A DNA stretch of 64,000 bases, taken from contig NC_134468.1 of the NCBI RefSeq assembly GCF_964194025.1, forward strand, positions 68,448,001 through 68,512,000, given 5' to 3'. Position numbers and translations under genes: made by a program. Under the pieces are notes generated by a model. That model was not told the origin of the DNA. It worked only from the letters and a program-made list of their open reading frames with translations, and made no database searches. This document shows, in pieces, positions 5,760-47,720 of the stretch; the stretch's first letter is position 1; each line of letters begins with the position of its first letter. The DNA is from Convolutriloba macropyga. Its lineage: Eukaryota.

Positions 5760-6319
5760 GTGTTCATAACTGCTCAAGATCCATCTGATGACTTTGAGAA
5801 GAACATCTACCTGTTACGGAAGCAGGCTTCTCACCAAGTACCAGGACCACACAACCTCCGATTCTACATCTGCAGTCTGTCAACGACCACAATTACATAC
5901 AAGGGTCTATTCACGTCTTACCAACTGTTCCAATACTTCCCAGACCTAGAAAACCCCAATTTGAAAGCTAAAATTGCCCTAGTACATAGCAGGTTCTCCA
6001 CCAATACTTTTCCATGCTGGGAGCGAGCTCATCCTCAAAGAATGCTGTGTCATAATGGTGAGATCAACACTTTGAGGGGGAACGTGAACGCAATGCGGGC
6101 TAGAGAGGGTGTGATGTTCAGTAAGAAATACGGGATGTCGCTCCAGAAACTGTATCCGGTTGTTGAAGCTGACATGAGTGATTCCGGTAGTTTTGACAAC
6201 GTGTTGGAGTTCATTCACAACACCAGTGACAGGACGCTGCCTGAGTCTATTCTCATGATGGTTCCGGAGGCGTGGGAAGAGGACACAAACATGAAGGAAA
6301 ACCGCAAGAACTTCTACAG
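5760..6319 (+). CDS. GLT1: NADH-GOGAT exon B (class II glutamine amidotransferase domain)
   Basis: (CT)n tract plus tttAG acceptor at 5758-5759. Motifs FYICSLS..TITYKG, HSRFSTNTFP.WERAHP, HNGEINTLRGN, SDSGSFDN. Donor AG|GTGAAG at 6320 (phase 2). Confidence 0.96.
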
Positions 6320-6553
6320 GTGAAGCTCGATTTTTGAGCCCAATTCTCATGGGCATCAACAATTTATCCGCGTTGGATATACTAGGTTTTTATCGCTCAG
6401 CATCATAAATTATGTTTTAATTGTGTTGAATGACCATTGGATTTGCTTGGAAATATATTTTTCAATAGAAGAAATAGTTGGCTTTTAGTTTGAAGGTGCT
6501 AACGCAAAAATGTCAATTTTTGGCTGTGAGAATTTAACACTGTGAATATTAAG

Positions 6554-11091: not shown

Positions 11092-11149
11092 GTAATATTT
11101 GAGTAATTAATAGCCGCCGTCAGCCTCTCAACAGCCTCAGTCTCTCCTC

Positions 11150-13080
11150 TTTTTTTTACAATTTAAAGACTTTGAATTGTATTGGGGCGCTGGCTTTTTT
11201 ACGACTCGAAGAGGAGTATTGGAAAAGTCTCTTAATCAATTCTATTGGATTGAATTTTGAAGCACGAAATGAAACACGGGAAAAAAGCGTGAGTTGTTGG
11301 TGAGTTGAAAAATTGGAGACTAGAGCGAGAAAGGATTGTTTTTATAGCTGTAAGCTGAGCGTAGCTATATTGCGGTGCTCTTGGTTTTTACAATTCAAAG
11401 AATTTGAATTGTATTGGGGCGCTGTCTTTTTTTAAAGATCTGTTCACACATTTTCATGATTTTTGAAGTCAAATTGGAGTAGTGATTTTGGTCACGCCGA
11501 AACAGGAAATGGAGCGGAAAAGCGAGTGGTTTTGCGGCGTGAATGTTTTTCGCTCTAATTTTAAAGTAGAGTGCGAAAATCGTGTTTGAACAAAAATTCG
11601 GTTTCTCGGTAGTGGTTTTCTGTTCACATGCGGCAATTTCACTCTGATTTTTACTGTTTTTTTCGATTTTTTGGATCGGATTTTTTTTCTAAATGGTTTT
11701 CCTAATCCATTCATAGCTCAGTCTAAGCCTATTTTTTTTGTTTGAATTGAATTTTCATTTCTCGCTAGTGGTTTTTTTTGTTCACATGCGGCATTTTGAC
11801 ATTGATTTTCTGTTTTTTTTCTTTTGATCTGATTTTTTAAAAAATGGTTTTCTCAATTCACTCATAGTTCATTCTTGGTCTAGTTTTTCTGTTTAGTCAA
11901 TGAAAATTCTTTGAATTGTACGTCAGGACTTGGCCTGCTATGTTTTTTGTTTCGTCGTCTGACGCTCTTTCGTTTTACATTTGTTCACACAGCAAAGCTG
12001 AAGTCATTTTCTGAATGACTTCTTCCTCTCACTAACGGCATTGGCGCGCGTGACGTCATTTCTCACTCGTTTTAGCGAAAGTTTTTAGGTTATTTGCGTG
12101 ATTAGATTTTGATCATACGTGACTTACCTCACTCAATAAAATGACCTTAACTTTAAAACTGTAAGTTTAATTTGAATTTGTTTAAGGTCAAAGGAACTCC
12201 TATGTGCAGTAAAGGTCACTAATAAGAGGCTTCTGTGGAATGAATTTTATTAAGTTTTATTGGTTTATCGCTGAATGTTTTTTAGCCTAGTTTTTTGAGT
12301 GTCGTCGATTTTTCAATTTAGGTCTGTATCTGTTTCTATCTCTATTATATGGCACGCAGGTCTATTCTTTCGCAGGTATTCCGGCAATCTGCCGGCTATG
12401 TTTTGTTCATTCTGCTGTTTTGGCGAGAGAGAGAAAGTGAGGTGTGAAAAACATTTTCTAAGCGAGCGATTTTTTTTTCGCATATGGCTTTTTAAAACCA
12501 ATTTTTTTTTCAAATTTTTTGGTTCGATCATGATAGTTTATTAATTTGTGGTTTCTTCTCATAGAGGGATGAAGGTTTTGTAGTTAATGCGTGTTTTATG
12601 CTAATTTGGAGGTTTTTTATCTATTTTGCTCACTTCAAGGAGAATTTTAGCGATTTTTCGTCTTCTGTTTTGCTTAACTATTACTTAAGGTGTCTTAAGC
12701 TACCGAGGGTTACAGTTTTGTTGTTTTCTTCGAGTGGTTTCCGGAGTTCTTCTGGCTATGTTTTTTAAAGATCGCACATTTTCATATTTTTTGAAGTCAA
12801 GTTGATATGATCTTCACGCCGAATCAGGAAGTGGATTTGCGGTGTAAAACTTTTTTGCTCTAATTTTTACTAGAGTGAGAAAATGGTGTTTGAACAAAAG
12901 TTCGCTTTGTCAGTAGTGGTTTTTTGTTCACATGCTGCTTTTTGACATTAATTTTTTTATTTTTTTGATTTATTGACTCTTTCTAGGTCCATTCTAGGTC
13001 TTGTTTTCCTGATAAGTCAATGACAATTCCTTGAATTGTTAATTTCTGTTAGGTCAATGAGAATTCTTTGAATTAAAGTT
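11150..13080 (+). repeat. Dispersed repeat family with several partial copies in the last GOGAT intron (~11150-11200, ~11355-11920, ~12760-13080)
   Basis: tgagcgtagctatattgcggtg.tcttggttttt.acaattcaaa...gaattgtattgggg occurs at 11356 and again at 46068. The segment aaagatc...cacattttcat...gaagtcaa...cacgccgaa.cagg repeats at ~11435 and ~12767. Confidence 0.8.
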
Positions 13081-13643
13081 CTTCGAATTGTGTCAGGACT
13101 TCTATTTTTTTAAAATTCGTTTTGCCTTTTGATCACGTTTTTCGTTTTGCATAAGTCACCATTTTCACGTTTGATTCGTGCCGTACCTCACTCATGGTTT
13201 CAACTGAATGGATTCTAAATTCTTTTCTTGCATTGAACTACGCAATGTAGTTATTACGGACAATGTCAAAGAGCAAAATCAAAAGAAACGGGATAAACCG
13301 ATAAAGCCCGGTCATTAATTCAGTTCATCAGGTTATCAAAGTCCATTAGAAATATTGCCAGCTGACATTAGTTTTAAGCTTAATAGTTTTCAGTTTAGGG
13401 CCTGAATTGAGTATAGTTTTGAAATATAACTATCTGCACATCGAATTAGAACACTTTTCAAAACTTCGGAAAAAATTCTGTCAATTTTCCTTTTTTGTCT
13501 TTTTTTTCAATCCTGATATGCTTGAAGCGCGTCAACGGTGGGTATTTTCTGGCAATTTGCTGGCTATGTTTAATTGATCTCAAAGTTTGTAGGAATTATA
13601 TTACTTCTGTTGGTCTTTTTAATGCGATTTTTTGTTTGACCGA

Positions 13644-13805
13644 TTTTTCGTCTGACCCATTTGACTTTTCGTCCTCAAAAACGGGATAAACAGGTAGCAC
13701 CCAGCAGGCATTAAGTTCTCTTTTGAAGCCTTTCAGCTCACTAGTCTCAAAGTATGCGATTCACAGAAACTGTTTTGGAGACTTATACTTCTGGTGTGAA
13801 GGGCG
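13644..13805 (+). repeat. Dispersed host repeat (copy 1)
   Basis: ttttcgtctgacccatttga.ttttcgtcctcaaaaacg.gataaacaggtagcacccag...ttttggagacttatactt.tgg matches 28503-28655. Confidence 0.88.
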
Positions 13806-13933
13806 GTACTTCACACCAGCAATTCGCTTTGATGTTACTCGGTTATTTTTTGTGTTAAGTTTGTTTGTGTCAGAAAATTTGAGCTACTCGTGACAAATTT
13901 TGGTTCGATTATCGTTAAAATGTGTCTGATTAG

Positions 13934-14619
13934 GTGCTGGCAAAGAAGACACATTGAAGCTTCTGGCCAAGGAGAAAGACGTCATCATAATCGGAGGAGG
14001 TGACACTGGCAATGATTGCATCGGAACCTCTCTCCGTCAGGGAGCCAAATCAATTACCAACTTCGAAATCCTGCCTGAGTCACCCGAAACACGAGCGGAT
14101 GACAATCCCTGGCCTCAGTGGCCCAAAATCTTCAGGACAGATTATGGACATTCAGAAGTCAAAGCCAAATTCAAATCCGACCCTAGACAGTATTGCATTT
14201 TGAGCAAGAAGTTCACCACTGATGAGAACAACAATCTAACTGGGGTCGATACCGTTAAAGTCAAATGGACTAAAGATCCCAGCACTGGTCGGTTCAATAT
14301 GGCCGAGATTCCTGGGAGCGAATCTCATTTTAAAGCAGATATGGTTCTGTTAGCCATGGGATTCTTGGGTCCAGAGAAAACAATAGCCAGTGAATTGAAA
14401 CTGAACCTGGACAATAGGGGCAATATTAAATGTGGCGGCGAAGGTCCCAAGAAGTACAAGACGTCGGTCAGTCGGGTGTTCGCGGCCGGTGACTGTCGGC
14501 GAGGCCAAAGCTTAGTAGTTTGGGCAATTAACGAAGGTCGTCAAGCTGCTAGGGAGGTGGACATCTTCCTTATGGGAAAAACTACGCTTCCACTCACTGG
14601 TGGCATATCAATGTCATAA
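13934..14619 (+). CDS. GLT1: NADH-GOGAT terminal exon D (NAD(H)-binding beta-subunit-like C-terminus)
   Basis: Acceptor TAG at 13931-13933, with phase matching exon C. Motifs IIGGGDTGNDC, NPWPQWP, FAAGDCRRGQSLVVWAINEGR. Stop TAA at 14617-14619. Confidence 0.97.
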
Positions 14620-17199
14620 ACATAGACTTAACTTAACTTTGAAAACTTTGAACTTAGACCTCAAAAGTTAGTCATCTGGTATACACATTTAGCAACTCAT
14701 CAAAAATCAAATAATGTATATGACGTAATAGGTTCTCCCAAGCTGCCAAATGATATAGCCGAAAATAAGTTAGCTAATGTAATTAGGTAAGGTTTTGCGA
14801 TTTTAACGCTTTTATCTAAATTTCACAAAAGTTATGAGATGCACAAAAAGGCTTGGAGATCCTATTAAGTAGTAAAGTCTGCAAATTTTTATTCATGTGC
14901 TTGAACGGAAGATGTTTTAATGGCTTTTACTAAGCTGCAGTGAAAGTTCAAATATGTTATGGTGCGAACAAGCTTTATAATTATGTAAATTAATGCTGCA
15001 GAAATTGGCCTCCATGTGAAATTGTCCCTTATTTACCAATGAAACACTGCGTTGAAATGTAATTTAATGGGTTCTTAAGAATGTTTAACCGGGGAAATGG
15101 GGGGGGGGGGGGGGTGTGGGGATTCACAGGACCATATGACATTACATGTTTGCTGTATTCCATAGTTTGTAACGGGATTGTATTTGTCCCTCCGAAAGTG
15201 CTCCTATCGCTTCTAATTTTTAAGCCAAGATGTTTAGAGAAAGTTAGATGTGATACGTTAGCTGTTTAAAACATATACCTGCAAGCTATATCGATAGATA
15301 CTACTACTCTTTTTGTCATTATTTCGATATATTTGAGCTATAAATGAAATTAGTGCTATTTTTGAATGTTCACCTTTTCTTACTTATTATTGTTCATTAG
15401 CTAGCTGACTGCCATAGACGGAGCTTGTTTTTAAAAGGTCACTTGTTTGTTACATTGCACATTGCTCTGCGCTGAAAATCTTAGGTCACATGAATGTGTG
15501 TATACTTTGAGGCAAAACACAGGAGGAGGCAATAAAAACAACAGCCGAGCGCGATATTAGCGGGAGTAAAATTTATGGACAAGGTTTGAAAATTGTCTGT
15601 CAGTCAGTCTGAAAATTGTCTGTCTGTCAGTATGACCCGAGATTTAAAGCAAAGTGGACCTTGCGAAGTGACTGATTTGATGATGACGATGATGCTAATT
15701 TATTAAGTGACAGATGTAGCTTGCTTGCACCACAATTGTTGGATCTAGCCAGACAAAACCACAAAGTAGGAAGGGCCATTCAAACAAAACTTCCGTAATT
15801 ACGTAATTTCTGCGTATTCGAATTCAGGCGTGATGTTGAGTGGCAAGATCGGACTGCTGAATCTTTGCTAACCATAGTTGATGCTTATTTAACATTAAGT
15901 TAAAAATATTTGGAATGACTTTATTCTTAATAGAACATTGTATCTTCTAATGTACATCGCTTACAAAATATAATCTGTAATATAAATCAGTTTTCTCCCA
16001 CTCAAGAAATTGAAAGAAATGGTCACATGAATCGGACTCCAACATCTGTGTTGTTGCCGAAAAAGGTTTGTTTTACAGTGGCTGAAAACTTCTTCACTAT
16101 TGCAACACCTTTGACTTTGACAATTGCAACCCTTTAACAATATTAACAAACGTATGTCACTGTAGAAATATTTTTCTGCTATTCCGATAAATAGGAAAAT
16201 CCAGATAAGTGAAACGTAAAGAGAGTGAGTTGACTCCCTCTTTAAAGCTGCTCGACTTGATCATGTTTCCAACATTTTGAGCTACTATTTACATTGTGAT
16301 TTTGACAGCCTTTTGATCAACATGTGGGACTAAAATTACTGCTTTTTAACGAAAACTGACAAACTTACATCTCCATTTTATCTTGAAATACTGTTGCAGT
16401 GTTTCTAAAAGAGTAATTAAATTTCTACCGATTCTCAGTCGAAGCATATAAATAGCGAGGAAAACGGATATTGAAGTAGGAACGAAAATGCTCTTGAGAA
16501 GCATGCAGTTTACCATGTATTTTGGCTACTTTAACGTTTACTTATGTTAATGAGTGTATTAGTCTTGATGGCCTTGTTTTGTTTTTCGTACTACCGTCTT
16601 TTTGTCTGATATTTTTGTTGAGTTTTCGTCTTCGAAAACTCGATAAACAAGTAAAGGGTAGAGGGAATTGAGTCGGTAAGCAGTTCTCCTAGAGGTTCAC
16701 GAGCCTCTGACTTCAAATCACCGAAGCTGCCGAATTGACAAGAATACCCTCTCTTAATCCCTCAGTACCCTCCAAATCTTTAGAGCCAAACAGTTTAAGT
16801 TAGCAATTTAGTGGTTCTAAATATTTAGATTAGTCGTGAAAAAATTTACATTACTCTGAAGCCTTTATTTTTAAAACAGTGTTTCGTATTACCGAATTTT
16901 GGCTCAGATTTTCAAATAACTTTCTTCACCCATGAGTTCCAGAGTTTTGGGCGAATGATTGCTCTCATGCAGAGTCTAAAGCAGCTTTGTTTATTTGTGG
17001 TTTTAATAATGAAAATATAAATCGCGCAGAACGATATTCCAGTCAATTTGATCTAATGTGTTAGTTGCTTTTCGTTGAAATCTATCTTTTTTTCTTGAAC
17101 GTTGTGTAATTTTGAATTCCTTAAATCCAATGAAGAGCAAGTGGACCACGTTGCTTAAAACCCGAGTAAAAAATTGACCAAAAACACGTGCGGGGCCGG

Positions 17200-18300
17200 A
17201 GAAAAATGCAAACATACGTAACATAAATCGGTTTTGCCGCAACGACTCTTGTTTGTCCATCTCGTCTAGGCAATGTATCCATAACACCTCGCAACGGCCT
17301 GCAACTTAATGGAGTTAGATGTTTTAACAATAACGCCATTTTTAAAAGTAGTCAATCATATCCATCTATTTTGATCGTCTGCTAGTGGTGCGCAGGTTTT
17401 CTTTTGCCAGACGTCTTTGTTAACTTTACATCAAATTTTCCACGTCTCGAAACCTACAGGGCGATGAAAGCCAAACTGTCCCGAATCGACGCTAGACAAG
17501 CAAATGGTTTTGCGTCTGTGGCCCCTCGTTGTCTCCTTGTTCGGCGACGTTTATCAAAGGTCGATAGTGGAAATTTGGCTCGGGTTCAAACAAAGTATGC
17601 GCTGAATATTCTTCCTGATCAGTGCGACTGATAGATTCTATTTTGAAGTGTGTAACTGGCTGTTGCTCTTTTCCGTGCAGACTGAGATGTTAAAACTGCG
17701 TCTACAGAAACAAAAAAATTTTCCATTTGATGCTTTCAAAAATCAGTAAATATTTTTCTGATCTTCATTGATCCTTATTATTGATGTGGAGAGTATTCTT
17801 TGTCCAACGCGTAGAAGAAAATCCAAATCCGTCGATGTTAGTTTATGAGATAATTAACGTGCATGCAATAATAAAGGGGAGCTAGCCTCAAGTTTTCGCT
17901 TCTAAGGTTTTTTGATTGTTTTGGATTCTTTTGAAAAGTGTATAGCAGGCGCAACAAGCGTGATTAAGTTGAACTGAAACTGAACTTAGATAGGGGTGCC
18001 AACTGCAAAAGCGCTGAGTTGGCATTAGTTTTTGATGCTCCGATCACAATTAAACGCGTATTAAACATCAAAAAAGTTCAGTTTTCAATTTTGTTGGGAG
18101 CCGGCCAGTTTTTTTTACTAGGCTTCTCAAGCGACTCGCTCTCGGAGATTCTTTACCTGGACTAAAGATTTATTTGGATCAGTGTATAATGTATTCCCGT
18201 CTGTGTCGAGCAGAATTAATTCTTTCTTGACCAATGGTTTAGATGAAACGAGTGACCAGAAATCTTTTTTAAATCATTTTTTGGATTTCAATTGAATTTT
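17200..18300 (-). mobile_element. Decayed BEL/Pao LTR retrotransposon pol remnant (integrase and C-terminal DUF5641-like region)
   Basis: Minus-strand fragments broken by stops and frameshifts: HYRPLINVAEQGDNEGPQTQNHLL (cf. LN.RPL......D...LTPNHFL), RRLAKENLRTTSRRSK (cf. .R...EYL..L..R.KW) and LLKHLTPLSCRPLRGVMDTLPRRDGQTRVV (cf. WPLGRV....PG.DG..RVV). The upper boundary is approximate. Confidence 0.7.
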
Positions 18301-18549
18301 TGAATCCAAAACTCAGGATAACAAAAACTTATGAAAACTTTTCTGGAACTGCTTATATTGTTTTTCGAGCGAATATTTTTCGGCAAATGTAATCGGCGGT
18401 TGTTTAAGCTTCTGCGCTTGTACATACCAAATTTTTGTTACGACCCCTCTTGAGGGGGGGGGAACAATATACTCAAATGGGTTTTTTTTTGTTCAGACAA
18501 TTTTGACCGATCGATATATTCATCGTAGAGATTTGAGACTGGTAAAATT

Positions 18550-21500
18550 TCGCCAATTTTTCTAAATTTTCTTCAAAAATTTTTCAACAAAATGTTGTTG
18601 ATTTTATTTTTAAAAACAAAGAAATCGTCGGCTATTTTTATTTACTTTTTTGTCAAAAATTCTGGCTAAAAATTTCACATAATTCCGACTTTTTCAATAA
18701 AAACAGCACGAAATAATTTTCTTTTGTTTACTTTGGTTAAATTTGCAGGAATTGCACACCCAAACACCACTAACACAATTTTTGTGGACTCAGAAGGAGG
18801 TTCTTTCTACTTCGATTTCCGTTGAGAGTGCTCAATAAATAAAACTTTGCCGTTTTGTTGCTATCTTTATTCGTTGATTATCAAAAACTCAGCATTTCTT
18901 TTGATTTTTTAACTAACAAAATAACTATATCTATAATATTCAAAAAATGTGTTCTTAATCGACAAACAGCATTAGCAGAGCTAATTTCACACCAACGTTG
19001 GACTGTTACAATCCAAAAATAATCCGGATTGTAATCAGTAGGTCTTTTTTATTAATAAAAATTCAATCTTTTTTCTACATTAATTAAATAACAGAACATT
19101 TCAAAGCAACGCTCACTAATTAGAGGTCCAATTGGATTCGTTATTAGCTCCACATTGTTGTATTTAGTTGATTACTTAAAAGCTCATAGTTGTTCTTTTG
19201 ACTTTTAAGAGTATTTGATTTTTGAATAAAAAATGACCTATTAAATTTTGCCTCTATTTTTCTCTTAATTTGGTCATTTTTTAGCTTATTGTCAGCAGGG
19301 AAAGAATGCCTCTTCTTTCTATTGAAATCAAATTTAATATTTATTGCAGTTGTACCCTTTAAATTATGTTTTTCTGGCTTTGATATTACTAGATTTCACA
19401 TTTTTTATAAAATTTATTTTTAGGTATTTGCCCATTTTTCACGTTTCCTAGTTTTGTCACATTATCACAACAGTTCGTATATCGCATTATTGGCTTTCAA
19501 ATTACGACACAATTGATAATATTAAATTCCTTGAAGATATAGATTTTACCGGCTTCGACACTACTTTCTCGAAGAATTTATTTGAATTTTTTTTTAAATT
19601 TTGTCTTTAACTGTCCTTTTTACTTCGTCGTTTTAGTCGTCTGAAAATTCCAGTACAATGACCCGGTTTCAATGGTTTTTAATGGAGTTATAAATGATCC
19701 GATATTCTGATATAATTAGATAGCTGATGGCTTTCATGACTCTGAAAACAATTGTTTTATAAATTAAAAAAAAACTTTGTGACTTCGCAATTTTGCTCAA
19801 TTTATTGCCTGTTTGTTATCTAGCCTTGTTAATTACAAGCCAAATATGACATTAATGTTGTCGAAGGAAAGCTGCCTTAGGAAATGGTGTCACACAATCT
19901 AATGTTTTTAAAGAATTCGTTGACTTTACTGGCTTCGACCCGGAAAAAAAGTAAATTAACTTTTGATTCTTGTCATGTTTGACGTTCTTTTTGCAGAATT
20001 AAGACATATTCTGGATAATTTCCATTCTCATGGGCTAGCTTTGGAAGAATAAACGAATTTCTATAATTTTTTCATTCTGTAACTAATGGCGATCATGTCT
20101 TCGGAAATATTTTTTTTGAAGAAAATTAAAGTGTTACTTTAATTTGCATTTTTTATCATTTTTTTCTACTTGTTACCTAGCTTCAATAATGAGAGGTTAC
20201 ATAATACATTATTGGTACTCGCAGAAAGTGCAATCCAACATATTTTGATGGCCAGATTATGATATTACGGTTTCGAAAGCGTTTTCTGCCAAGTTTTAAT
20301 TGATTTTTTTTGTTGTCTATTTGTTGTTCTTTTTGTAACCGCATAGAAAATCGAATACCAGCAGTTCTTAATTCCTTCTATGGAAGAATTGGTGATTGTA
20401 AACCTATGGGATATTTTAGTTGGTTTCTGATAGTAGGTTTTTAAAAAAATTAAATAACAGAACATTTAAAATCAAAGCCCACTTGTGATAGATCCAATTC
20501 GCTTCCTAATTGCCTCCAAATCATTGTATCTGCTTTGTTACCCGAAAGCCTATGGTCATTTTGACATTTTAAAATATTTGATTTTTAAATAAAGAATGGC
20601 TGATTGAGTTTGCCTCCATTTATCTCTTAATTTGTTAAACTTGTAGCTTACTGTCAGCAATGAAAGAATGCTTGTTCTTCCTACTAATTCAAATTCAATT
20701 TTTATTGCGGTTTTACACCTTAAGTTATGGTTATCTGGCTTCGATACTACTAGATTTCACTTTTTTTATTTTCAAGTATTTTTCTTTTTTTCACGTTTCT
20801 CAGTTTTGTCACATTATCACTTTATTGACAGTTCATACATCACATTTTTGGCGTTCAAAATGAGGCACAATTATTAATATTAAAATTCTTAAGGATAGAG
20901 ACTCTGGTTTTAACGGCTTCGACAATACTTTCATGAAGAATTTATTTGAGTTTTATAATTTTGTCTTTGACTGTCGTTTTTACTTTGTCTTTTTAGTCGT
21001 ATGATTTTTCCTTTACAGTGACTTGGTTTCAGTGGCTTTTCATTGAAAAATAGATGGGCCGATATTCTGTTAGTAGTAGGTAGCTGATGGCTTTCACAAC
21101 TTTGAAAACAATCGTTAGTGTCAGCAGTGGAAGAATGCTTTTCATTTCTACTGACTTGAAATTCAATCTTTATTGCGGTTTACTCCTTAAGTTATGGTTT
21201 ACTGGCTTTTATACTACTAGATTTCACTTTTTTTTTATTTTTATGTATCTGCCCAATTTTCATGTTTTCTAGATTTGTCACATTATCACTTTATTGACAG
21301 TTCATACATCACATTTTTGGCGTTCAAAATGAGGCACAATTATTAATATTAAAATTCTTAAGGATGGAGACTCTGGTTTTAACGGCTTCGACAATACTTT
21401 CATGAAGAATTTATTTGAGTTTTATAATTTTGTCTTTGACTGTCGTTTTTACTTTGTCTTTTTAGTCGTATAATTTTTCCTTTACAGTGACTTGGTTTCA

Positions 21501-23250
21501 GTGGCTTTTCATTGAAAAATAGATGGGCCGATATTCTGTTAATAGTAGGTAGCTGATGGCTTTCACAACTTTGAAAACAATCGTTAGTGTCAGCAGTGGA
21601 AGAATGCTTTTCATTTCTACTGACTTGAAATTCAATCTTTATTGCGGTTTACTCCTTAAGTTATGGTTTACTGGCTTTTATACTACTAGTTTTCACTTTT
21701 TTTTTATTTTTATGTATCTGCCCAATTTTCATGTTTTCTAGATTTGTCACATTATCACGTTATAGACAGTTCATATATCACATTATTGGCATTCAATAAT
21801 ATTGATAATATTAAAACTTAAATCCTTAAAGATATAGATTGTGGTTTTTTACGTCTTCGACACTGCTTTCACGAAGAATTTAAATGACTTTTTTTTAATT
21901 TTGTATTCAACTGTCGTTTTTATTTGTCTTTTATTCGTATGAAACTTCCTGAACAATGACCTGGTTTCATTTGCTTTTCAAAGAGTAAGAGATAAGCTGA
22001 TATTCTGATACTTGAAGATGGCTGATGGCTTTCATGACTTTGAAAGCAATTGTTTTCCACAACAAAAAAAAAACAAATTTAACTTCGCAATTTTGTTCCT
22101 TTTATTTTCTGTTTTTTATCTAGTCTTGTTAATTACAGACCAAATATGACATCGCTATTGCCAAGGGAAAGTGTCAAAAGCGATTGTTGTCACAAAATCT
22201 AATTTTTTAAAAAGAATTCGTTTTGAATTTACTGGCTTCGACACTGGTTTTTCCCAAAAAAAAGTAAATGAATTTTTCATTTTTGTCGTATTTGAGGTTT
22301 TTTGTAGACGTAGAATAATTTCTGGATAACTATATGTATCAACGGCTTCATTTGAAAAAAGGAACCTAATTGATTATTTCATTTTGTAATAAATGGCTTT
22401 CATGTCTTCGGAAATAATTTTTTTCGAAAAAAACAAGTATTAATTAAATTTGCCGTTTTTTTCTTTTTTGCTTTCTTGGTACCTAGTTTCATTAATGAGA
22501 GGTCGTATAATACCTTATCGGTGTTCGAAGAAGGCACAGTCCAACATAATTTGAGGGCCAAAGGATGGCTTTACGGCTTCGAATGTGTTTTCTGGCAAGT
22601 TTTGTATGAAAGTGTTTTCTGGCAAGTTTTGAATAAGGACTAATGTATGAATACCAACAGTTCTTAATTCCCTTCTGTAGAAGCATAGACAATTCGCTTC
22701 TAATTCCCTCCCAACAGTTCATTACTTTGATATTAATTGTGTTTTTTTAAATAAGCGAACTTTCCAACTTTACTGTTTTTGTTCTTTATTGTCTAATTGT
22801 TGCCAAGTCTTATTATGGACTCGTCCCACGTCTTTTCTGATGAATTAGAAGTCATTTTATTGAATTTAATTTCTATCCGACGCTATTTTGACTTTGTTAT
22901 TAAGTTTTGTTTTTTAAAACGGACATAAAGTTTTTGATATAACAATTGTTTGTTGTTGTTTTTTGATTTTGATGTTCCCGTTGACTCGCTTTTTTAATAT
23001 TGACCTATCTCATCAATGCAATGCTTCATTTCTTACTCCACTGAGTTATTTTCTTTGGAGGCTATATTTTCGTTCAAACACCAATTTTTTTTTGAAAAAT
23101 TCTTGAATTTTTGGGTTTTTCTACCTGTTCCTCATTTGGTAGACAATTTTATGCCAAAATTGTGGATGAGCGCGGTCGGGACCTTATGTGCGATCGCACA
23201 TTGCCGAGCCTCCTTGTTGATTGAGCATTTAAGTTTTGTAATAACCTGAA
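18550..23250. repeat. Degenerate tandem repeat region (~1.4-kb periodicity), distantly related to the 4.27-kb satellite
   Basis: Landmarks recur at ~19093 and ~20460 (agaacattt...ccaatt). gtcacattatcac occurs at ~19456, 20807, 21277 and 21746 and also in the satellite (52615). cctcatttgg (23130) and aattagagg (19118) are shared with the satellite. Confidence 0.7.
20805..21770. repeat. Recent, near-perfect 469-bp tandem duplication
   Basis: ORF translations at 21087 and 21556 (offset 469) differ by one residue, and the nucleotide blocks match. Confidence 0.93.
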
Positions 23251-25629
23251 TTGCGTTCATAATTATTTATCGTTTGTAGAGACTTGTGCGCTCGATTTGA
23301 GCAACATTTGTGTTACAAGATGTTTATAGTGAGATATTCGCGCCATTATCAGACATGTTGTAGGTAGTTGCGGGAAATTCCTCCCTATAATTAGCATCAA
23401 AACCAATAACTAATTTTCGAATGAATTTTTTGAAGTAATGTAGATTGGGAGAACCAAATTATAGAGGAATTTTGAGCTGCTAGTTAGCTATAATTTTGTT
23501 GCATTTTACAAAGAAGAAAAGCTTCAGTATTCATAAACATTCTCGGAAACTCTAATTTGAGAATTCTCATTTTTTTGGCGCCAAAGTTTATTCTGAAATA
23601 CGAGCTTAATCTTTTGTCCACTTTTGTTGCGTTTTTAACCGACTATATTCCCATTTATGTTTTTTGTTCTCCTATTGTGGAATTTGCCTCAAGACCTCGG
23701 AGGCCATTTTTGATATCAGATCTGCACTTCACGCGCTTTTACTTGGCACCATGGTTATTTTCTAAAGATGCATAATTTTTGAAATTTTGGACGTCTTCGA
23801 AATTTTGAACGATGCTATATAATAGTAATAATAATTCTGTGATCTATTAATATTAGTTGTCATGATACTGCTGTGATTATTGACGTGAAGTCGAAGCGGC
23901 CGTGAAAAGAAAAGAGGTCCCCCCTTTATTGCAAACAAAAAATCCGGAAAAAAGCTTCAGTTTTTATTAAGTTTGGTCAAAATTTTTGAGAATTCAGAAG
24001 CTGAGTGACATTCTTCCATATCTGCAAGAAGCTGTCAGTGTATTCTTTTTTGCTTTCAACTAGTAATGTAAATTCGTGGCGACTATTAATAATACAATTC
24101 AAGGTGTTTTTAACGCTTCAATAACTCGTTTTAAATTTTTTCTATCATTTTTGTTCTCTTAACAGCTAGCTACAAATTACATGCAAAAGCGCGGTGTTTT
24201 TAGCTTTAACATTATTATTTCATTTGTTAATTCAGAGATTAAATTAATCTGCCGGAAAGGAAAACAATAAATACATTAGTCAAGTTTGTCTGGAGCCGTG
24301 AACGAAAGCAGAAAAGTTAGTTGATGTTGAAAACTCCATTAATACCACTTTTTATAGAATTCAGTTCAATAAAAAATTGTTTGGGCAGTCAGCCGAAAAT
24401 GGTTGTGAATGCTTTGCATCACAAAACTAAATGTGCTTAAGAAATAGTAATTTTTAAAATTAAAAAAATTTGGTCATGTTATTCTGTTATTCTTCTTTTA
24501 GACCAAAATTCAACACCCCCCCCCCCCCCCCCCCCCCCACCATTTTCATTAGTCCTTATTTACTTATTTTGTTATTTTCATTAATTTTGATCCTCACATG
24601 CAATGGTACCGCAATACTTTAATTCCTGATGTAATTTACAAATTTAATTGTAAATAAAAAATCTGAAATGAAAGGTAACGTACATAGATCAACGGAAAAA
24701 ATATTAGAACAGTCTAAACCCGGCAGCATGGTCTGTGTAGATATAGTGAAGCTTGACGGAATGAATTATGCTAACTGCGCTTTTCCAAAATTGGGTCTTG
24801 CGGTCGCAATATCACCCCTGAGACGAAACTTGAGAAGGATAATAGTAACTGGTAGTGACAATTCAATTTAACTGCTATGTTCTATCCTCAGTTTATTTTC
24901 CCATTTTCATGCACAAGTTCGGTTTTCATATTCTCTGTCCGCATTAAAATTCATTTTTAATCTGGAAGAAATTATCAAGACATCTTATCTATTCTGGTCA
25001 ATAACTACTTTCAAAGAGAAGTTTAAAAATAGTTCTAGTATCTCCGTAGAATATGAATAATTGAGTTTCCATCTGTTTTAAACATATACAAAATTTTGTG
25101 CTACTTGGTAACCTGTCTTGAGCTATTTCGCTTCTTGGGCTACAGAAAAATCCTTGTGAAAAATTCTTGAAAGATCGCAAATTTAGATTAGTTTTCAGGT
25201 ATCGCTTCAAAAATTGCTTGTTCATGACAGGGCAAAATTTGAGGACAAATATTTTATATAAAGGGGAAACCTGAAGTGTTCAGAGCGAATATGGACGCCA
25301 GATTGTTCGTAGTGGGTTCAAAATTACAAAATCTGCAACCCTCTAAAATTGCATGCAAGCAAATACCAACGTACAAAAGTCTGAACATGAACGGGAAAAA
25401 TATCTGGTCTTGAGCGAAAATCTTTTCGTACGCTCATCAATCAGTCGCGTGTTCACATCCAGGCTTTTATGTAATCACCAGACGCAGAAAATGTTATACG
25501 AGATAGCAATATCTGATCGTCTGAAATTTTTTTTACACTGAATCATATTGTCCATAAAATCAACTTGATCACAACATGATAACAAACACGTGAAACAAAG
25601 CAAAGAATTAAAAGCACCAAGTCTAAATA

Positions 25630-25662
<33 letters not shown>
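25630..25662. repeat. Compound (GT)n(GA)n microsatellite
   Basis: Directly visible in the sequence. Confidence 0.93.
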
Positions 25663-25663
<1 letters not shown>

Positions 25664-28502
25664 AAGAGTGAATTGACCACTCTAACAAACATTTTATCGA
25701 ATGAGCAGCTTGTTAAAGATGTGGAAGTTATAGATAACCGATTTTCGCTTTGGCTTAGTTTTTAACGTAGCAAGCAAAAATATCTAAGTGTTTAAGACGC
25801 TACAGTTTTTTTTACAAAACACGCGTGTTTAAACATAACTTATAACATCAAACACAGAAAAAACAAAACAACGTGCCGTCAAAGTAGCAAGCGACTGCGA
25901 AGNNNNNNNNNNNNNNNNNNNNNNNNNNNNNNNNNNNNNNNNNNNNNNNNNNNNNNNNNNNNNNNNNNNNNNNNNNNNNNNNNNNNNNNNNNNNNNNNNN
26001 NNNNNNNNNNNNNNNNNNNNNNNNNNNNNNNNNNNNNNNNNNNNNNNNNNNNNNNNNNNNNNNNNNNNNNNGAGAGAGAGAAATAGAAAACTTAATCTGA
26101 ATATATAAGAGATCACTGCAATTGTGCGAAATATCGAGTCAGTAAACTGATGAACTAATTGATCATGAACCAACGATAACTCTAGACAAGACAGGATTTT
26201 AAGTGTACAATTGGTATCACCATAAACGCACCAAATTTGGAAAGAGAAGCATGTGGAAAACTTTTTTTTGCCTTTGTCCAAAATCAAGCGTCCGCGCATT
26301 CATGTTTTGCGTTGAGCATTTAGCATTGAAACAGCGTTAATGAAAAGGATCCAATGCTTTTGTCGCTTTTCACATAGTCTTCAATTTATTGAGCTAAAAA
26401 TTTTCCAATCTTTCAAAAAGCTAACAATTTGTTCAGAAGAAATTAAGATATCCCAAGTAAACAACCCATATTAGTCGAACATGTCAGTCGAACATATCAG
26501 AACGCACGATAAAACTCGGCAAAACAGCAAGAAGCAGACAGTAAAAGTAGCGGACGAGTTCATGCAAAAACGGATGAAAGGAGAGAAGTAGAGAGAGCGG
26601 GAAGAGAGGGTTTTGACAAAGTATTTAAGCATCTGGTACTATTTGAAAAATATTGTAGAGACGATTCAAGATAACAAATTGAGTGAGGTCACGTAGCCCG
26701 TCAATGATCATTTAAGCTACTTCTCATACACAATCCATAGATATGTAAAACATTTTTCTTGGAATCAAAATAAAGAAAGAAAACAAAATTTTAGCGGTTC
26801 CACTAAACTACGAAATTAAATTTTTTAATTGTAAAATTGTACAACAAACTTCCCATTTAGTTGCGACATCACAAAATAGGGAAGTTCTGACTTTTACCCA
26901 CAAAGGTTTTGCCTATTTCCCAAGGTCAGTGTGTAAAAGAGCCTGTTTTTCCCCCAAGTTTGATTTTCTATTCCGATTCTTTTTTTCCAATTTCTCTATA
27001 ATAATCGTGAAATTAAAATATTTTGAATGATAAGAAACTTGTTTGCATGGTTTGTAGAAGTGAAAAGTTAGATCTTAATGTTTCTTTTATTTTCTTGAAA
27101 TAACGAAGTTTGCGTAGTTTAGCTATGCTTCTAAGCTCATTCGCAAATGAAATAATATATTCAAGCGTTTTGAATTCAAAATCCAATACAGCTAAAACTA
27201 CGGATTAAATTGCTTAGTGAGCCTCAATGAATTTGCTCGGGGGTCCCTGAGTTTTCAGGAAACAACTCTTCTCTGAATTGTGACTAATCCTTAGAATGTA
27301 AAATAAAAATAGTTACTACTGCCGAATTCCATCAAAATTGATATAATCTGTGAACGAAACCTGAGGTCAAAGTTTCATTTATTCGGTTAAGAATTTTCCT
27401 AATTGCAACCAAACTTCATGTGTTACCGAAACTAAGTTTAATCAATTAGAAATTTTGGTTGACACTGATTTTTAAAATGAGAAATTGAACGCATTTTAAT
27501 CAGAAGCAGCTCTCATAACTGGTTTAATTTCTAATATCTACTTTTCTCACGCCCAACAATTTTCTTTTTTTTTAACCAATTTCTGAGGCCAGTATCCAAT
27601 GACATCTTTCAAGGGGGATTAGTAAAAGGGAATTAATGAAATGCAACTCTTAAACTTGCCAACTTTTGTATATCCTTCGTCGCAGCCCNNNNNNNNNNNN
27701 NNNNNNNNNNNNNNNNNNNNNNNNNNNNNNNNNNNNNNNNNNNNNNNNNNNNNNNNNNNNNNNNNNNNNNNNNNNNNNNNNNNNNNNNNNNNNNNNNNNN
27801 NNNNNNNNNNNNNNNNNNNTTTTCCTGTTCTTGTCCGGTGCCCAAAATGGGAGCTAATAATGGATGTATCCTGGAAAAGGAAAAAGGAAACACAAAAAGA
27901 GTGAAAATAGGAAAGGTTGATTAATTTCGGTTTGGATTTCTGAGGAATATGGGCTATCTTTTTAAACTAGACAAGTCATGTTAAGCGTTGAAATTTTCCA
28001 TATGCATTTAAACTCTATTCTCCATTTAAAGCTGATGATAAATCAACAGTACGTCAAAGAAACATGGTATAGGGGGAACTGCTCACTATTATTAGGGGCA
28101 ACCAAAATTTTGACCCCAACAATGATAACTTTACAAGCCATCTCCATATGAAGTATAATAGCATATATGCTGCATACATCTTCGGTTTCTGTAAAAATTT
28201 TAGTAATGCCAACATACCCAATATTTATCCCAAAAATATATCAGTCCCACAGCTCTTAACTTGAATTCAAACTTATGAGCAGATGCTCCCATTTTTTCTT
28301 CAAGCAACAAAAATGGCAGCGAAAACTACTCCACCAAATTTCAAGATGAATTTAAGATGGCATAGAAAGTTTTGGCAACTTAGGCAGCTAAAACTCATTG
28401 GCCATTGACAACACTTTGGATATGATTGTGAACATTGAGAAAAAGTTGCTTTCTACCTGCCTTTTTAATTGCTCTCAAATGAAGTAGGTCTTTTTAATGT
28501 AA

Positions 28503-28655
28503 TTTTTCGTCTGACCCATTTGAGTTTTCGTCCTCAAAAACGAGATAAACAGGTAGCACCCAGTGGGCATTAAAGACTCTTAGAGCTTTTCAGCTCACTA
28601 GTTGCCAAGTATGCGAAACTGTTTTGGAGACTTATACTTATGGTTTCAAGGGCGA
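28503..28655 (+). repeat. Dispersed host repeat (copy 2), ~190 bp left of the GC-rich island
   Basis: Near-identical to 13644-13805. Confidence 0.88.
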
Positions 28656-29802
28656 TTCTTAGAGGTTAAGCCCCAAACCCAACATAACCACCCCCCCCGC
28701 CCACATAAGCCCCCCCATACCTCACTTCACCCCCGCTCACAATCCCCAATAGTATTATGATGCACGTGAAATTTTTTTCTAATCGGTTCTTTTACAACTA
28801 GTATCTGTTGAGCCTTGACTTAAAACTATTGTCATAATTTACATCTGTGGGCCCGCATACTATGCTACACACCGATAAACTCTGCCTTGTGACGACTTGT
28901 GAGCCAATCGCCGCATGCACCTGGCAGGCGGCCACAGCCCACCTACCGAGCCGGGGCCAGCAGTGGAGGCCATGACTGGGTCACAGATGGGCACACACCC
29001 GCACCATTCTTAGCGCTATGTTCAAGTGCTATCTATATACTATACGATACCCGCCATCTATGCACGATCAGAGTGATTCGGTACCCGACACTGTAGGTAT
29101 GGACGAACAATACCCGCGAGCGTCGTCCAGCCAGCGGACCCTACCACAGAGGAACGGAGGGAGGGCGTCGTGGGTCAGCATTGAGGCGCCCCACCCCAGT
29201 CCAGGTAGCGCTGCACGCTCCCCCACTGATGACCACATGTGACCGTCCGCGTAGCCCTCCGCCATGAAGTGTACCCTGCCAGGCTCCCGCCAAGGCCTTG
29301 AATCCCCGCTTGTTCCACCACGGAACCTGGCAACTAGGCTGAGGTGCATCAGGGGCTTGTCGACAAACATACATGGTGGGTGGGTGCTGGGGTGATTGGG
29401 TAGGCATTGCGGAGGGTCGATCCATGACGGCCGGAGCGCAAGTGCTGTTGGTCATGACCGTGAACCTGCAGGACCATAACGGGCAAGTGATTGGGGTTGG
29501 GATTCAGCCGCTGCATGCAACGGTGACTGGGTGATCCTGATCTCCCTCAGCCTCACCGCCGGCCCTTCCGCCTCGGCCATCAACGCAGTCTCCCGTCTCT
29601 CCCTCGCCACCCGTCTCTCCCTCCCTCCCTTTCTCGTCCCTTTTGTCTCAGGCTGCCCTGCCTCCTGCCTTCCATCCCTCCTCCCCACCGATTCTGCTCC
29701 CCTCCCCTCGCCGCACCTCGGCCCCTCCCACTCGAAGCGCAACGCCCCCTCCGCTGAGGAGCAAAGTGCAGCCGTGGCGTCTCACCTGATGAGGAGGAGG
29801 CA

Positions 29803-29964
29803 TCACTTAGCCTCGTACCACGTCGGCGCAACCTTAGAGTCCACCAGCAACTGGACCCGGAGCGGGTTTTCGCCATCGAACGGTTTCTCCATGCACTCCA
29901 CAACCAGCGCCTGGGCCTCGTCCTTGTGCTCCTCCGGCCCTTCGAGCATCACCTCGTCGTGGAC
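29803..29964 (-). CDS. POP: POP terminal exon (motif C)
   Basis: Acceptor gtcAG|GTC. Translates VHDEVMLEGPEEHKDEAQALVVECMEKPFDGENPLRVQLLVDSKVAPTWYEAK*. The C-terminus W-Y-x-A-K-stop is as in plant POPs. Confidence 0.95.
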   Translation of the reverse strand, partial: VHDEVMLEGPEEHKDEAQALVVECMEKPFDGENPLRVQLLVDSKVAPTWYEAK

Positions 29965-30234
29965 CTGACCAAATCAAGGCATGGCACATGAGGTGCTGGG
30001 CGAAAGGGGATCCGGGAGGGCCGGCCTGCTGCCATTGCAGTACGTGCACCCCCACACAGCGTCGTTTTGCAGTGCTGATGAGGATCAGGGGGAGGGTGCT
30101 ATGGGTGGGACCAGGGACTGCAAAGACAGCAGGAGCACGCAGGTGAATGGACTGAGCTGGGAAGGAACGGTGGATGAGGGTGGACCGGCAGACTGGAAAG
30201 CCGACAGGAGGGTTCAAGATGTGACTGCATTTAC

Positions 30235-30480
30235 CTGTAACAGGAGAGTGTACCCGAGCTCCTTGAGCCTCTGGCACCTGTCGATGGATATCATCGCGGC
30301 TGTGGCAACATCGGCCGCCGAACCCTGGATAGGCGTGTTGATGGCCGCCCGCTCTGCCCTCCCCTTCAGCCCCTGGTTCTTAGCGTTGATGCCAGGCAGC
30401 TTGCGGCGCCGCCCCAGCAGCGTGGTGACGTACCCGTGTTGCCTAGCAAACTCCCTCTGCTTCTCCTGCCACCTTTCCAC
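30235..30480 (-). CDS. POP: POP exon (fingers/palm)
   Basis: Splice context tacAG|GTG...CAG|GTaaat. 82 codons including GYVTTLLGRRR and ERAAINTPIQGSAADV. Confidence 0.95.
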
Positions 30481-30970
30481 CTGTATTCGGGAGGGCATCC
30501 GTGATGCATGGGCGGTCCAGGCCGTCGTATGGTCAAGTTGCAGTCTGGAGGCGAGGCTCAGGCCCAGCTGCAACCATCAACGCTTTCACCTCTCTCTGTC
30601 GCAGCGCTCCCTGTCACTCGCTTCCCCTTTCCGATGCCCAACCATCTCCCTCTTGGCATTCCCTCAACCGCCGTGTCTGATCGCTCCCTCTCCATCCCTT
30701 CAGCTCCCGTCGCCCCGCTCATCCTGCCGTCCGTCCGCTTCTCGCCGGTTCTCTCTCTATCTTAGCTCTACATATCTTACCACTGTTCGCCAATCTCAAT
30801 GTTAGACTCTACTTGGTTCCCTCTCCTGTGGCACCGACCCCGCAACTTCCGTCCTCCCTGGGGGTTTAGCCTTGTGTCTTGCCCGCCCTCCTTTCCCCGT
30901 GGGGGAATTCCTTCCTGTGTCCCTTCTCTGCCCGCCCCGGAGCTCAAAGTGTTTTGGCCACGTGTCGCAC

Positions 30971-31087
30971 CTCCGCTCGGTCTGCATACCACCGCCTGAC
31001 AGTCGCCTCCGCCTCTGTGACGTTGGTCCCAAAGTCCTTCGCCAGCCCGTGAGCGGTCTTCCCGTAGGCAATGCTGAAGTTGAGCAC
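30971..31087 (-). CDS. POP: POP exon (motif B)
   Basis: Splice context cacAG|GTG...GAG|GTgcga. 39 codons, VLNFSIAYGKTAHGLAKDFGTNVTEAEATVRRWYADRAE. Confidence 0.94.
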
Positions 31088-31520
31088 CTGTGAGGCAGGG
31101 CCGGGAGGTGCGCAGGGTAAGCCGGTAGAAACACTTGGGTGACGGTGGCAGTGGGCGGGGGCCCAGACTGGGGGACGGGAGAGAAGGCAGCAACAGAGCG
31201 GCGATTCACCATGCCGAGGTGTTCAGACGCGAGCGCTCCACAGATTCAATTTCAATCCGCTTCCTTCAAAACGGACAGGCCATCGCTGTTGCTCTCTAGG
31301 TTAACTCCACGTCTCCTCAACACTCCCCGTGTCGCAGTCTCATTCCCATGCCCATCCACCACATCTTCGCCATCCTTTTTTTTGTGTGTTCCCCGTTCCC
31401 CTGCCCCATTCCCTCTTCCCCTCTGTCCTCTGGGCCCCTTAATTTTTGCGCCCCTCCCCTCCCGTCCTGTCTCCCTTGCTCTTCCACTCTTTGCCCAACC
31501 GGAGGTGATTCGAAACGCAC

Positions 31521-31583
31521 CTTGGCCTTCCGTCTCTCGCTGCCGTACTTGTCTTTGATGAGGGGCACCGGCGGCGGCTCTCC
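31521..31583 (-). CDS. POP: Plant/algal organellar DNA polymerase (POP, family A), first visible exon
   Basis: Splice context tgttcAG|GGA...AAG|GTgcgt. 21 codons, GEPPPVPLIKDKYGSERRKAK, matching the POP-type 'PPVPLLKD.F.SERRKAK' segment before motif B. Confidence 0.92.
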
Positions 31584-31756
31584 CTGAACACAGCATATGT
31601 ACAGGGTCAGAGTTCTCTACAGGACATAAAGACGCCTGGCCATTGGGATGGGCCCAGGCAAGGGGGGGAGGTTACTCCAGCCGGCCTGCAACCGCACGGG
31701 ACGCACACAGAGGGTGACGATGGCGTTGATATGGGAAGGCAGGGATGAATTGCAGG

Positions 31757-31956
31757 NNNNNNNNNNNNNNNNNNNNNNNNNNNNNNNNNNNNNNNNNNNN
31801 NNNNNNNNNNNNNNNNNNNNNNNNNNNNNNNNNNNNNNNNNNNNNNNNNNNNNNNNNNNNNNNNNNNNNNNNNNNNNNNNNNNNNNNNNNNNNNNNNNNN
31901 NNNNNNNNNNNNNNNNNNNNNNNNNNNNNNNNNNNNNNNNNNNNNNNNNNNNNNNN
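31757..31956. other. Assembly gap of exactly 200 N (other gaps: 25903-26071, 169 N; 27689-27819, 131 N)
   Basis: N runs. A round size of 200 suggests a scaffolding join. Confidence 0.97.
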
Positions 31957-37512: not shown

Positions 37513-38342
37513 CTTCCGCTGACATGACTTTCGAACGCAGCGTGATGACATTCGTGCACGAAATAGTTCATCAATGGATGGGGGGTTTAATCGTGAACGA
37601 ATGGTGGTCCGACTTCTGGATCAATGAAGGCCCAACTTGTTACTTCAACATTCAAATTATTCGAAAACTTGTCAAGTTACAAATCATTCCAGATTTGAAT
37701 TATGATTTCATTTCAAACGATTCACTTGACCAATCAGAGCTCAAAATAGTTGCAGAGCAGAAAAAATCATTGGCTAAAGATGGTTTTGACTTTCATGGAT
37801 TTTCTAGAAGTTTTTACACACATTCGTTGCAAGCTACAGAACTTTTAGATACAGCTATGAATTACACGCTTATGCCATGTCTTGGCCTTATACTGAAAAA
37901 GAAGCAATTTTCGTCCGTTTCTGTTAAAAATTTACTCGACGAACTTACAAGTTGTCCATTAAGTAGTTTAAACGCAACAAGTTTTATGCATTTTTGGCTG
38001 TACGATAATCGGGTTCTAATTGTAAAGCTCGAAATTTCCTCAAAACCCCCCTCAAAGTTTGAACGCTCTGATAATTACTACAGCATCAAGGTTTCTTTTG
38101 ATTTCTTGTGCCCTGAAAAAAGTTCGAACAATTGTACGAAAAAGATTGAACCCGGATTCGAACCCCATTTCGCGTTAACTTTATATAGTCAAAATGGCTC
38201 TATATTACAACCACCGATTTTAATTGCAAGCAACAATACAAATGTCGGGCTCAAATTTAACCCCGAAAACGTTGAATTCGTGGCAAATGCGCATTATAAA
38301 GCTCGTATTTTAGTAGAACAGCCAAAATTTGTTAACAGCTGA
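37513..38342 (+). CDS. M1 family (aminopeptidase N-like) zinc metallopeptidase, catalytic-domain exon; partial or possibly a pseudogene
   Basis: HEIVH-x18-E motif (HEIVHQWMGGLIVNEWWSDFWINEG). FSRSFY sits where the catalytic Tyr is expected. There is an in-frame stop at 37506 and a candidate acceptor cAG at 37510-37512. No GAMEN-containing exon was found. Confidence 0.82.
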
Positions 38343-46685: not shown

Positions 46686-47667
46686 GTTTATACCGAATGC
46701 AATTGATCTCTTAAAATCTCAAAACGCGCAATCCAAACGGTTGGCGTAAAATTTCTAACCCTAACCCTGAAATTTCTAGCCCTATAATTTCTAACACTAA
46801 ATTTTCTTTTGCCCTGTCTGTTGAGAATCTCTAGTATGCCGACGACCACTACATATGACTAGGCTTTGTTTCAACCACAGGCGTGGGTTGTCGGTATTAG
46901 TTTGTTCTCGACGATCATAAATCGACCTAAGATTGCAGCGTTTGACTGGCAAGGGATTTTTTTTCACCATATTGATAAGAATTGAAAAAATAATACTAAA
47001 TATATTTTCTGATAGCTCCATCTCTCTCATTGCATGACTGAGGATTTTCAAGTGTGTTAGAAAAGACACTACAATAGAGCCATCTATGAGAGAAGGGTAG
47101 CTTATATTTTACAGAAAAAAAAATTTAAATTTCCTGTCAAAATAGACGCATGCAAAGATTTTGGATCTGTCGTCTTCGGAATGTTGATTAGGCTCAACAG
47201 TGACTCTGTCGCCCTGAAGATCGATCAAGTGAAATAAACAAAAAGTTTTTAATTAGCAAAGCAAGCGCTACTTTGTTATTCGGCCCTTTCCTTTATTCCA
47301 TTCTTGTTCGCTGTTGCAATTTAGATTGTCTCAAAATATTTTATTCTCAATAAAGCCCTGAATATCAATTATTGCACTTCAGTAGAAAGAACAATCTAAG
47401 GACAATTTATAACAGTTATTGAGATAATATTAATAATACTCTATCCGTGTTTCATATCCCAATTGAATTTGAACAAAAAGCTCACAGTATCTCAACTATT
47501 CTTGCATTTACAAAATAAAATGAAGAAAATTAAACTTTCGCAACACTATAGGCGTTCCAGTTTGTCCCCCAAGATTTAAGTTCTCAAATTTTTTTGCTTT
47601 AGCTACCTCTCGACTCTCAATCAGCCAGTCTTTCTCGACCTTAATCACAAACGTTCTCAATCTCGTA

Positions 47668-47670
<3 letters not shown>

Positions 47671-47719
<49 letters not shown>

Positions 47720-47720
47720 T
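47671..47720. repeat. Compound (CT)n(GT)n microsatellite
   Basis: Directly visible in the sequence. Confidence 0.95.

Follow-up and report, generated by a model that had tools for sequence, protein, structure and literature searches.

An algal organellar DNA polymerase gene in a Convolutriloba macropyga scaffold is very probably a chimeric contig tip and not a transferred gene

Has a green alga's gene for copying organellar DNA moved, introns included, into the genome of an animal? The question is raised by a window of 64,000 nucleotides from the Convolutriloba macropyga assembly (GCF_964194025.1, contig NC_134468.1, forward-strand positions 68,448,001 to 68,512,000). Positions 28845-31756 of this window form a GC-rich island of algal sequence, which carries on its minus strand the 3' part of an organellar DNA polymerase (POP) gene with introns and 3' UTR, truncated at both ends. 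The first-pass annotation of the window headlined a recent DNA-level transfer from alga to animal and offered a chimeric contig end as its fallback reading. Among the checks that it proposed were a comparison and phylogeny of the spliced peptide, and a comparison of the island's sequencing depth with that of host sequence. If the transfer were true, it would be a striking move of an organelle-replication gene from photosymbiont to animal; Opisthokonta have lost POP and use Pol gamma instead (PMC10877234; PMC6523293). The analysis described here leads to another answer. The island is very probably a chimeric contig tip made of DNA from a symbiotic or otherwise associated alga, and not a gene that was transferred into the animal.

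How sharply does the island differ from its surroundings? Its GC content is 0.61, compared with about 0.31-0.37 in the adjoining sequence and about 0.29-0.37 elsewhere in the window outside coding exons, and its introns range from 59 to 66% GC. GC at third codon positions (GC3) is 0.83 in the coding part of the island versus 0.45 in a host exon of the glutamate synthase (GOGAT) gene. This host exon is an open reading frame of 1510 codons (6570-11102). Its best named relatives are found in bryozoans, nemerteans, molluscs and arthropods at 58-60% identity, and three unnamed ENA proteins match it at 100%, 85% and 77%. Judged by its sequence, the GOGAT gene near the island is of animal type, and such low identity to named proteins from many bilaterian phyla would fit a sparsely sampled lineage such as an acoel. 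The DNA directly to the left of the island is also host sequence. This host flank (27820-28844) is 92% identical to L003:15323-16384 and includes a host repeat of very high copy number (at about 28480-28743), a further copy of which lies within the window at 13643-13811. To the right, the contig that carries the island ends in a run of 200 Ns (31757-31956), so that only a single junction is available and host sequence is not re-entered.

The structure of the gene was reproduced as it had first been read, and chance can be dismissed as its cause. Four minus-strand exons (31583-31521, 31087-30971, 30480-30235 and 29964-29803) join into 195 amino acids followed by TGA, with no internal stops. The length of each exon is a multiple of three and each is flanked by AG...GT. 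The spliced peptide contains RRKAKVLNFSIAYG (motif B) and QVHDE (motif C) and has the C-terminal end WYEAK. The first of these exons (31521-31583, 21 aa) ends in SERRKAK and holds the start of motif B. The second (30971-31087, 39 aa) begins the remainder of that motif with VLNFSIAYGKT, and the third (30235-30480, 82 aa) encodes part of the fingers and palm of the polymerase domain. The last coding exon (29786-29964) contains motif C (VHDE), WYEAK and the stop codon at 29803-29805, and includes 17 bases of 3' UTR. A 320-base GT-AG intron within the 3' UTR (29466-29785), missing from the first-pass list, begins 17 bases past the stop codon; its minus-strand ends read GTGAGA...TGCAG. The remaining minus-strand sequence (28845-29465), truncated at 28845, would be 3' UTR or downstream algal sequence. 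In all, the window contains no more than the last 195 residues of a protein whose expected length is about 1000-1200. Motif A, the N-terminal 3'-5' exonuclease domain and the targeting peptide of such a protein would be encoded upstream of 31756, past the run of Ns.

Direct evidence for splicing comes from public sequencing data. Three public runs from one study (here X1, X2 and X3, from samples S1-S3) were used together with a 2016 run from another study under the same species label (X4). In X3, a contig of 1370 bases (record 19) is spliced on the island. It lacks 30481-30970 and 29965-30234, and its joints on either side of the third coding exon omit 490 and 270 bases. The pieces of the spliced contig end at 31083 and resume at 31517, covering 31517-31583 of the first exon, which fits an intron at 31088-31520. 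Its splice sites are exactly those predicted for the three coding introns. The intron in the 3' UTR is placed by a further X3 joint (29463>29784, cut +2), and contigs 18 and 19 of the same run cover the truncated sequence beyond it. Upstream of 31583 the spliced contig has 523 extra bases that match nowhere on the window. These bases show that the upstream exons of the POP gene lie elsewhere and that the owner of the gene expresses and splices it. It is the alga itself that expresses and splices this gene.

What type of polymerase is encoded? Exons 2-4 match successive parts of the Pfam DNA_pol_A profile (PF00476, length 381), namely 213-246, 252-332 and 333-381. Exon 3 alone matches it with E=2.7e-23, and matches Pol I large fragments in the PDB with E of about 8e-16. 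A family A polymerase domain with the catalytic motifs B and C is thereby present. Exon 3 was also searched against 1.84 billion representatives, and algal proteins of about 1000-1400 aa (Chrysophaeum, Gonium, Sanguina) were among the best full-length matches. Further searches seeded with those algal proteins gathered POPs from green algae, land plants, stramenopiles, haptophytes, Amoebozoa and Thecamonas. A search of the ESM Atlas with exon 3 returned short bacterial family A fragments only, which are uninformative on origin, and two open reading frames of the island (119 aa and 274 aa) had no recorded counterpart in exact look-ups.

The closest relatives of the spliced peptide are the POPs of Tetraselmis striata (76.4% identity) and Tetraselmis sp. 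GSL018 (75.4%; UniRef A0A061RMH8). Both align without gaps over 195 of 195 residues and share the C-terminus of the island peptide, as well as its motif B (RRKAKVLNFSIAYGKTAHGL) and its motif C (LLLQVHDEV), and both proteins contain PF01612 as well as PF00476. About 24% of residues differ between the island peptide and either protein, which indicates that the source was neither of these species. Identity between the two Tetraselmis proteins in this region is no more than 75%, so that the identity of the island peptide to them falls within the range of the genus. Next in order are trebouxiophyte POPs at 68-70% identity. Across other core chlorophytes and land plants (Elliptochloris, Coccomyxa, Trebouxia and the Arabidopsis-type Pol IA/IB), identity to the island is 60-70%.

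These relationships are mirrored in a maximum-likelihood tree of 59 rows and 198 columns (LG+C20+F+G4). It was built with Pol gamma and PREX left out, and its outgroup consisted of eight bacterial Pol I sequences, checked against NCBIfam, and a Pol theta-like protein. The island peptide groups with both Tetraselmis POPs (100/96), and this clade is nested within core chlorophytes (96/83). The other core chlorophyte and land plant POPs fall outside the Tetraselmis subclade, unlike the island peptide, and share with it a clade against PolA. That POP clade is split from bacterial PolA and Pol theta by a 100/100 branch. Bacterial DNA polymerase I (the Klenow, Bst and Taq large fragments) belongs to the same fold family and is 39-45% identical over the island fragment; it differs in lying across the 100/100 branch, and the gene of the island is set apart by its spliceosomal introns and its eukaryotic transcripts. 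Taken by its motifs, matches and placement, the island gene is identified as a POP of core-chlorophyte type and Tetraselmis-like. The first-pass annotation was thus right about the family, and the best matches and the tree both uphold its guess of a Tetraselmis-type donor; the peptide comparison and phylogeny that it had proposed place the sequence with Tetraselmis POPs and away from bacterial PolA and Pol theta. For chloroplastids, POPs are reported to be targeted both to the plastid and to the mitochondrion (PMC10877234; PMC6523293). As a gene, the island POP is an ordinary member of its family from a Tetraselmis-like alga.

Does this algal gene reside in the animal genome? One reading is a fixed or common germline integration of at least 2.9 kb of algal nuclear DNA, introns included, which occurred recently at 28844/28845. 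Several observations are in keeping with it. The junction in the window is free of gaps and the host flank is truly host. The donor alga is also a regular associate of the animal; island sequence is contained in X1, X2 and X3, from three samples of one study. The depth of the island speaks against such an integration. In X1, word depth is 3.5 for the contig that carries the island (record 8, 4112 bases) versus 26.6 for a contig of unique host flank (711 bases). In X2, the island has a depth of about 2-9 versus 50 for the host flank. The island is thus present at 8-13% of host depth, and in neither run does its depth equal that of the flanking single-copy host sequence. The host repeat at 28480-28743, for its part, has a word depth of about 1.8e5-2.5e5 in both runs. 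Of the checks that the first-pass annotation had proposed, the one on depth therefore goes against transfer.

The contigs of the public runs also leave the window at the junction. X1 record 8 spans exactly 28845-31756 and extends 474 bases beyond 28845 and 726 bases beyond 31756. Contig 10 of X2 continues for 101 bases beyond 28845 and contig 18 of X3 for 146 bases, and none of these continuations is found on the window. The 30 displayed letters of the X3 continuation are 60% GC. All public-run contigs thus pass 28845 into other sequence, which is at odds with a germline integration at this point. On the host side of the junction, X1 has no contig over 28744-28844, yet 98% of the words of the island are present in this run. 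A 91-base query across the junction found at most two of five sampled words in any indexed run, which is weak evidence as only five words were sampled. The junction has no support from independent data. It should be read together with the fact that Logan contigs discard rare variants, so that a rare true junction would go unseen.

Two further observations bear on residence in the host. First, a comparison of the island with the short-read contigs gives two single-base differences in homopolymer length (29682 and 31129) and no substitutions over 2.9 kb. Differences confined to homopolymers are what free algal DNA would be expected to show in a long-read consensus of thin coverage, and zero substitutions against the alga's own contigs give no sign of residence time in the host. 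Second, X4 contains the host flank (depth of about 3.4) and the repeat, and its depth over the island is 0 throughout; as X4 is shallow, this counts as moderate evidence only.

Is the island present at the same locus in an independent assembly? An ENA contig from the same animal, ctg30797_35x_l (79.5 kb), encodes the exact product of the GOGAT exon and was walked in four steps. It is collinear with the window over 10455-28844 at 87-97% identity, with an extra segment of 8 kb at about 27430 of the window. Along the host flank (27820-28844), the alignment stops at exactly 28844, where the two sequences share the end ...AATTTACAT. Past this point the window continues with CTGTGGGCCC... and the contig with TAAAACTAAAAATG... 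The contig then runs on for at least 9 kb at a GC content of 0.28-0.39. The island was not found in this sequence, nor does the contig rejoin the window sequence to the right of the gap within those 9 kb. A Peptidase_M1_N exon on the contig has no tblastn match in the window. With a divergence of 3-13% from the window, ctg30797_35x_l represents another haplotype or another individual, and the absence of the island from it would also fit an insertion that is polymorphic. The host/alga breakpoint at 28844/28845 is accordingly marked from both sides: the independent contig diverges past 28844, and the contigs of X1, X2 and X3 begin to match at 28845. The join is blunt and without microhomology.

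At the same locus, then, the island is missing from both ctg30797_35x_l and X4. Given the low depth, the different continuations past the junction and these two absences, the transfer reading is unsupported. A fixed or common germline integration, for which the second junction is also absent because the island ends at a gap, is extremely unlikely. The island very probably does not belong to the genome of the animal; every test of residence run here gave a negative result. The headline transfer of the first-pass annotation is thereby contradicted, by depth, by the run contigs that pass 28845, by X4 and by the independent contig. Its fallback reading of a chimeric contig end agrees with the depth, the continuations and the independent contig.

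Could a real integration be rare enough to escape these comparisons? Symbiont DNA may have been inserted beside the high-copy repeat somatically or at low frequency, in some cells or individuals, and then caught by the assembler. A low island depth and an absence from other assemblies are both compatible with this reading, and in such associations the symbiont lives inside host cells or closely touches them (PMC11091193; PMC12308330). If such a rare junction were true, DNA of a photosymbiont would have been caught in the course of entering the genome of an animal. The same evidence would be produced by a chimeric read, which is a far commoner event and from which such an insertion is indistinguishable. 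Moreover, the island comes without a second junction, a target-site duplication or microhomology. Free algal DNA fully accounts for the low depth, and its contigs extend beyond both ends of the island. A rare real integration is for these reasons very unlikely.

An assembly chimera remains the preferred explanation, and its probable course can be outlined. The island itself is genuine nuclear DNA, and its source is a Tetraselmis-like member of the green algal class Chlorodendrophyceae, most likely the photosymbiont of the animal or at least an alga consistently present in the samples. In the sequenced animals, the depth of this alga would have been about one tenth of that of the host. The island carries the end of the nucleus-encoded POP gene of the alga, with four coding exons and the 3' UTR; the enzyme replicates plastid and mitochondrial DNA. 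The host contig appears to have ended just beyond a repeat that is present in thousands of copies. Its low-coverage algal extension of 2.9 kb would stem from a single chimeric long read or from a few of them, with a blunt join, and scaffolding would afterwards have set the 200-N gap behind the algal sequence. One point against a chimera is that the junction is free of gaps in the window and must hence have been joined by some read or path of the assembler. A chimeric read is the likely mechanism of this join.

Was the alga a resident of the animal? A casual alga from the environment or from food, or a laboratory contaminant, would also have led to an assembly chimera. An identity of merely 75-76% to the two available Tetraselmis POPs could be taken in favor of a casual source, yet this value is within the range of a genus whose two reference POPs differ as much from each other. 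Identical island sequence was recovered from all of samples S1-S3, and the depth of the spliced transcript in X3 is comparable to the host repeat signal there; both argue against a chance visitor. A casual source is thus unlikely, and a resident symbiont is the likely one.

The island resembles the chimeric contig ends known as contaminants of holobiont assemblies in several respects. It has a sharp break in composition and a foreign depth, it has a repeat on one side and a scaffold gap on the other, and it is missing from an independent assembly. Unlike the usual contaminants, it continues gap-free from host sequence within a piece of chromosome scale, where ordinary contig-level screens would miss it. 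For one Tetraselmis-bearing acoel, the published genome was obtained from aposymbiotic juveniles in order to keep algal sequence out (PMC9911081). The present case shows that algal DNA can hide in chromosome-scale host scaffolds as contig tips adjacent to gaps and so escape contaminant screens that work at the level of contigs. Other alga-like genes in this genome therefore need tests of depth and of junctions before they are labeled as host-encoded. In the assembly, 28845-31756 of the window should be removed or flagged.

One alternative account of the left end of the island was considered and rejected. The letters TGTAA at this end resemble the poly(A) signal of chlorophytes, and could have suggested that a reverse-transcribed pre-mRNA had been inserted. 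These letters lie on the host side, within the end that the window shares with the independent contig (...AATTTACAT), and algal transcripts and contigs extend past 28845. Apart from its position in this scaffold, the 3' end of the POP gene with its four introns provides a nuclear marker for the associated Tetraselmis-like alga.

Beyond the host flank (window 27820-28844), the independent contig (ENA ctg30797_35x_l, which covers the same locus) continues into further genes. Past the equivalent of window position 28844, it was shown to carry two tandem Peptidase_M1_N genes of 330 aa, located approximately 3.2 kb apart (L004:1-4156, a stretch walked along this contig). When these genes were searched by tblastn across the whole window, no match was found; a Peptidase_M1 catalytic exon is present in the window at 37524-38342. 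The 200-N gap at 31757-31956, which closes the right end of the algal island, probably reflects a loss of host sequence from the window or an incorrect scaffold join.

Two other N runs, both of odd length, lie to the left of the junction at 25903-26071 (169 long) and 27689-27819 (131 long). Both sides of each are collinear with the independent contig, where the corresponding spacings are ~95 and 180 bases. The behaviour of these runs is that of brief masked or unresolved segments, not of scaffold joins. At the equivalent of window ~27430, the independent contig has an extra 8-kb segment (L003:6717-14752), which probably reflects structural polymorphism or the duplication of a gene or element. 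Two units arranged in tandem within this segment are similar to window 47160-49180 read in the opposite direction, although their identity is only 67-77%.

Next to the junction, a host repeat of very high copy number was identified at 28480-28743 from word depth in the sequencing runs X1 and X2. Its word depth of ~1.8e5 to 2.5e5, versus 26-50 for the unique flank, implies thousands of copies, and the run contigs show many variant joints at this repeat. Within the window, a further copy is found at 13643-13811 and a short match at 16618-16653. Between the repeat and the junction, a degenerate G-rich stretch (ggggg...tggttatgttgggtttgggg) was observed on the minus strand at 28690-28760. The independent contig has this stretch as well, so it belongs to the host and does not stem from read-end noise.

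An animal NADH-type glutamate synthase gene is encoded on the plus strand at 5760-14619. A single exon of this gene, at 6570-11102 (plus strand), spans 1510 codons, which is unusually long; other exons lie at 5760-6323 and 13954-14619 on the same strand.
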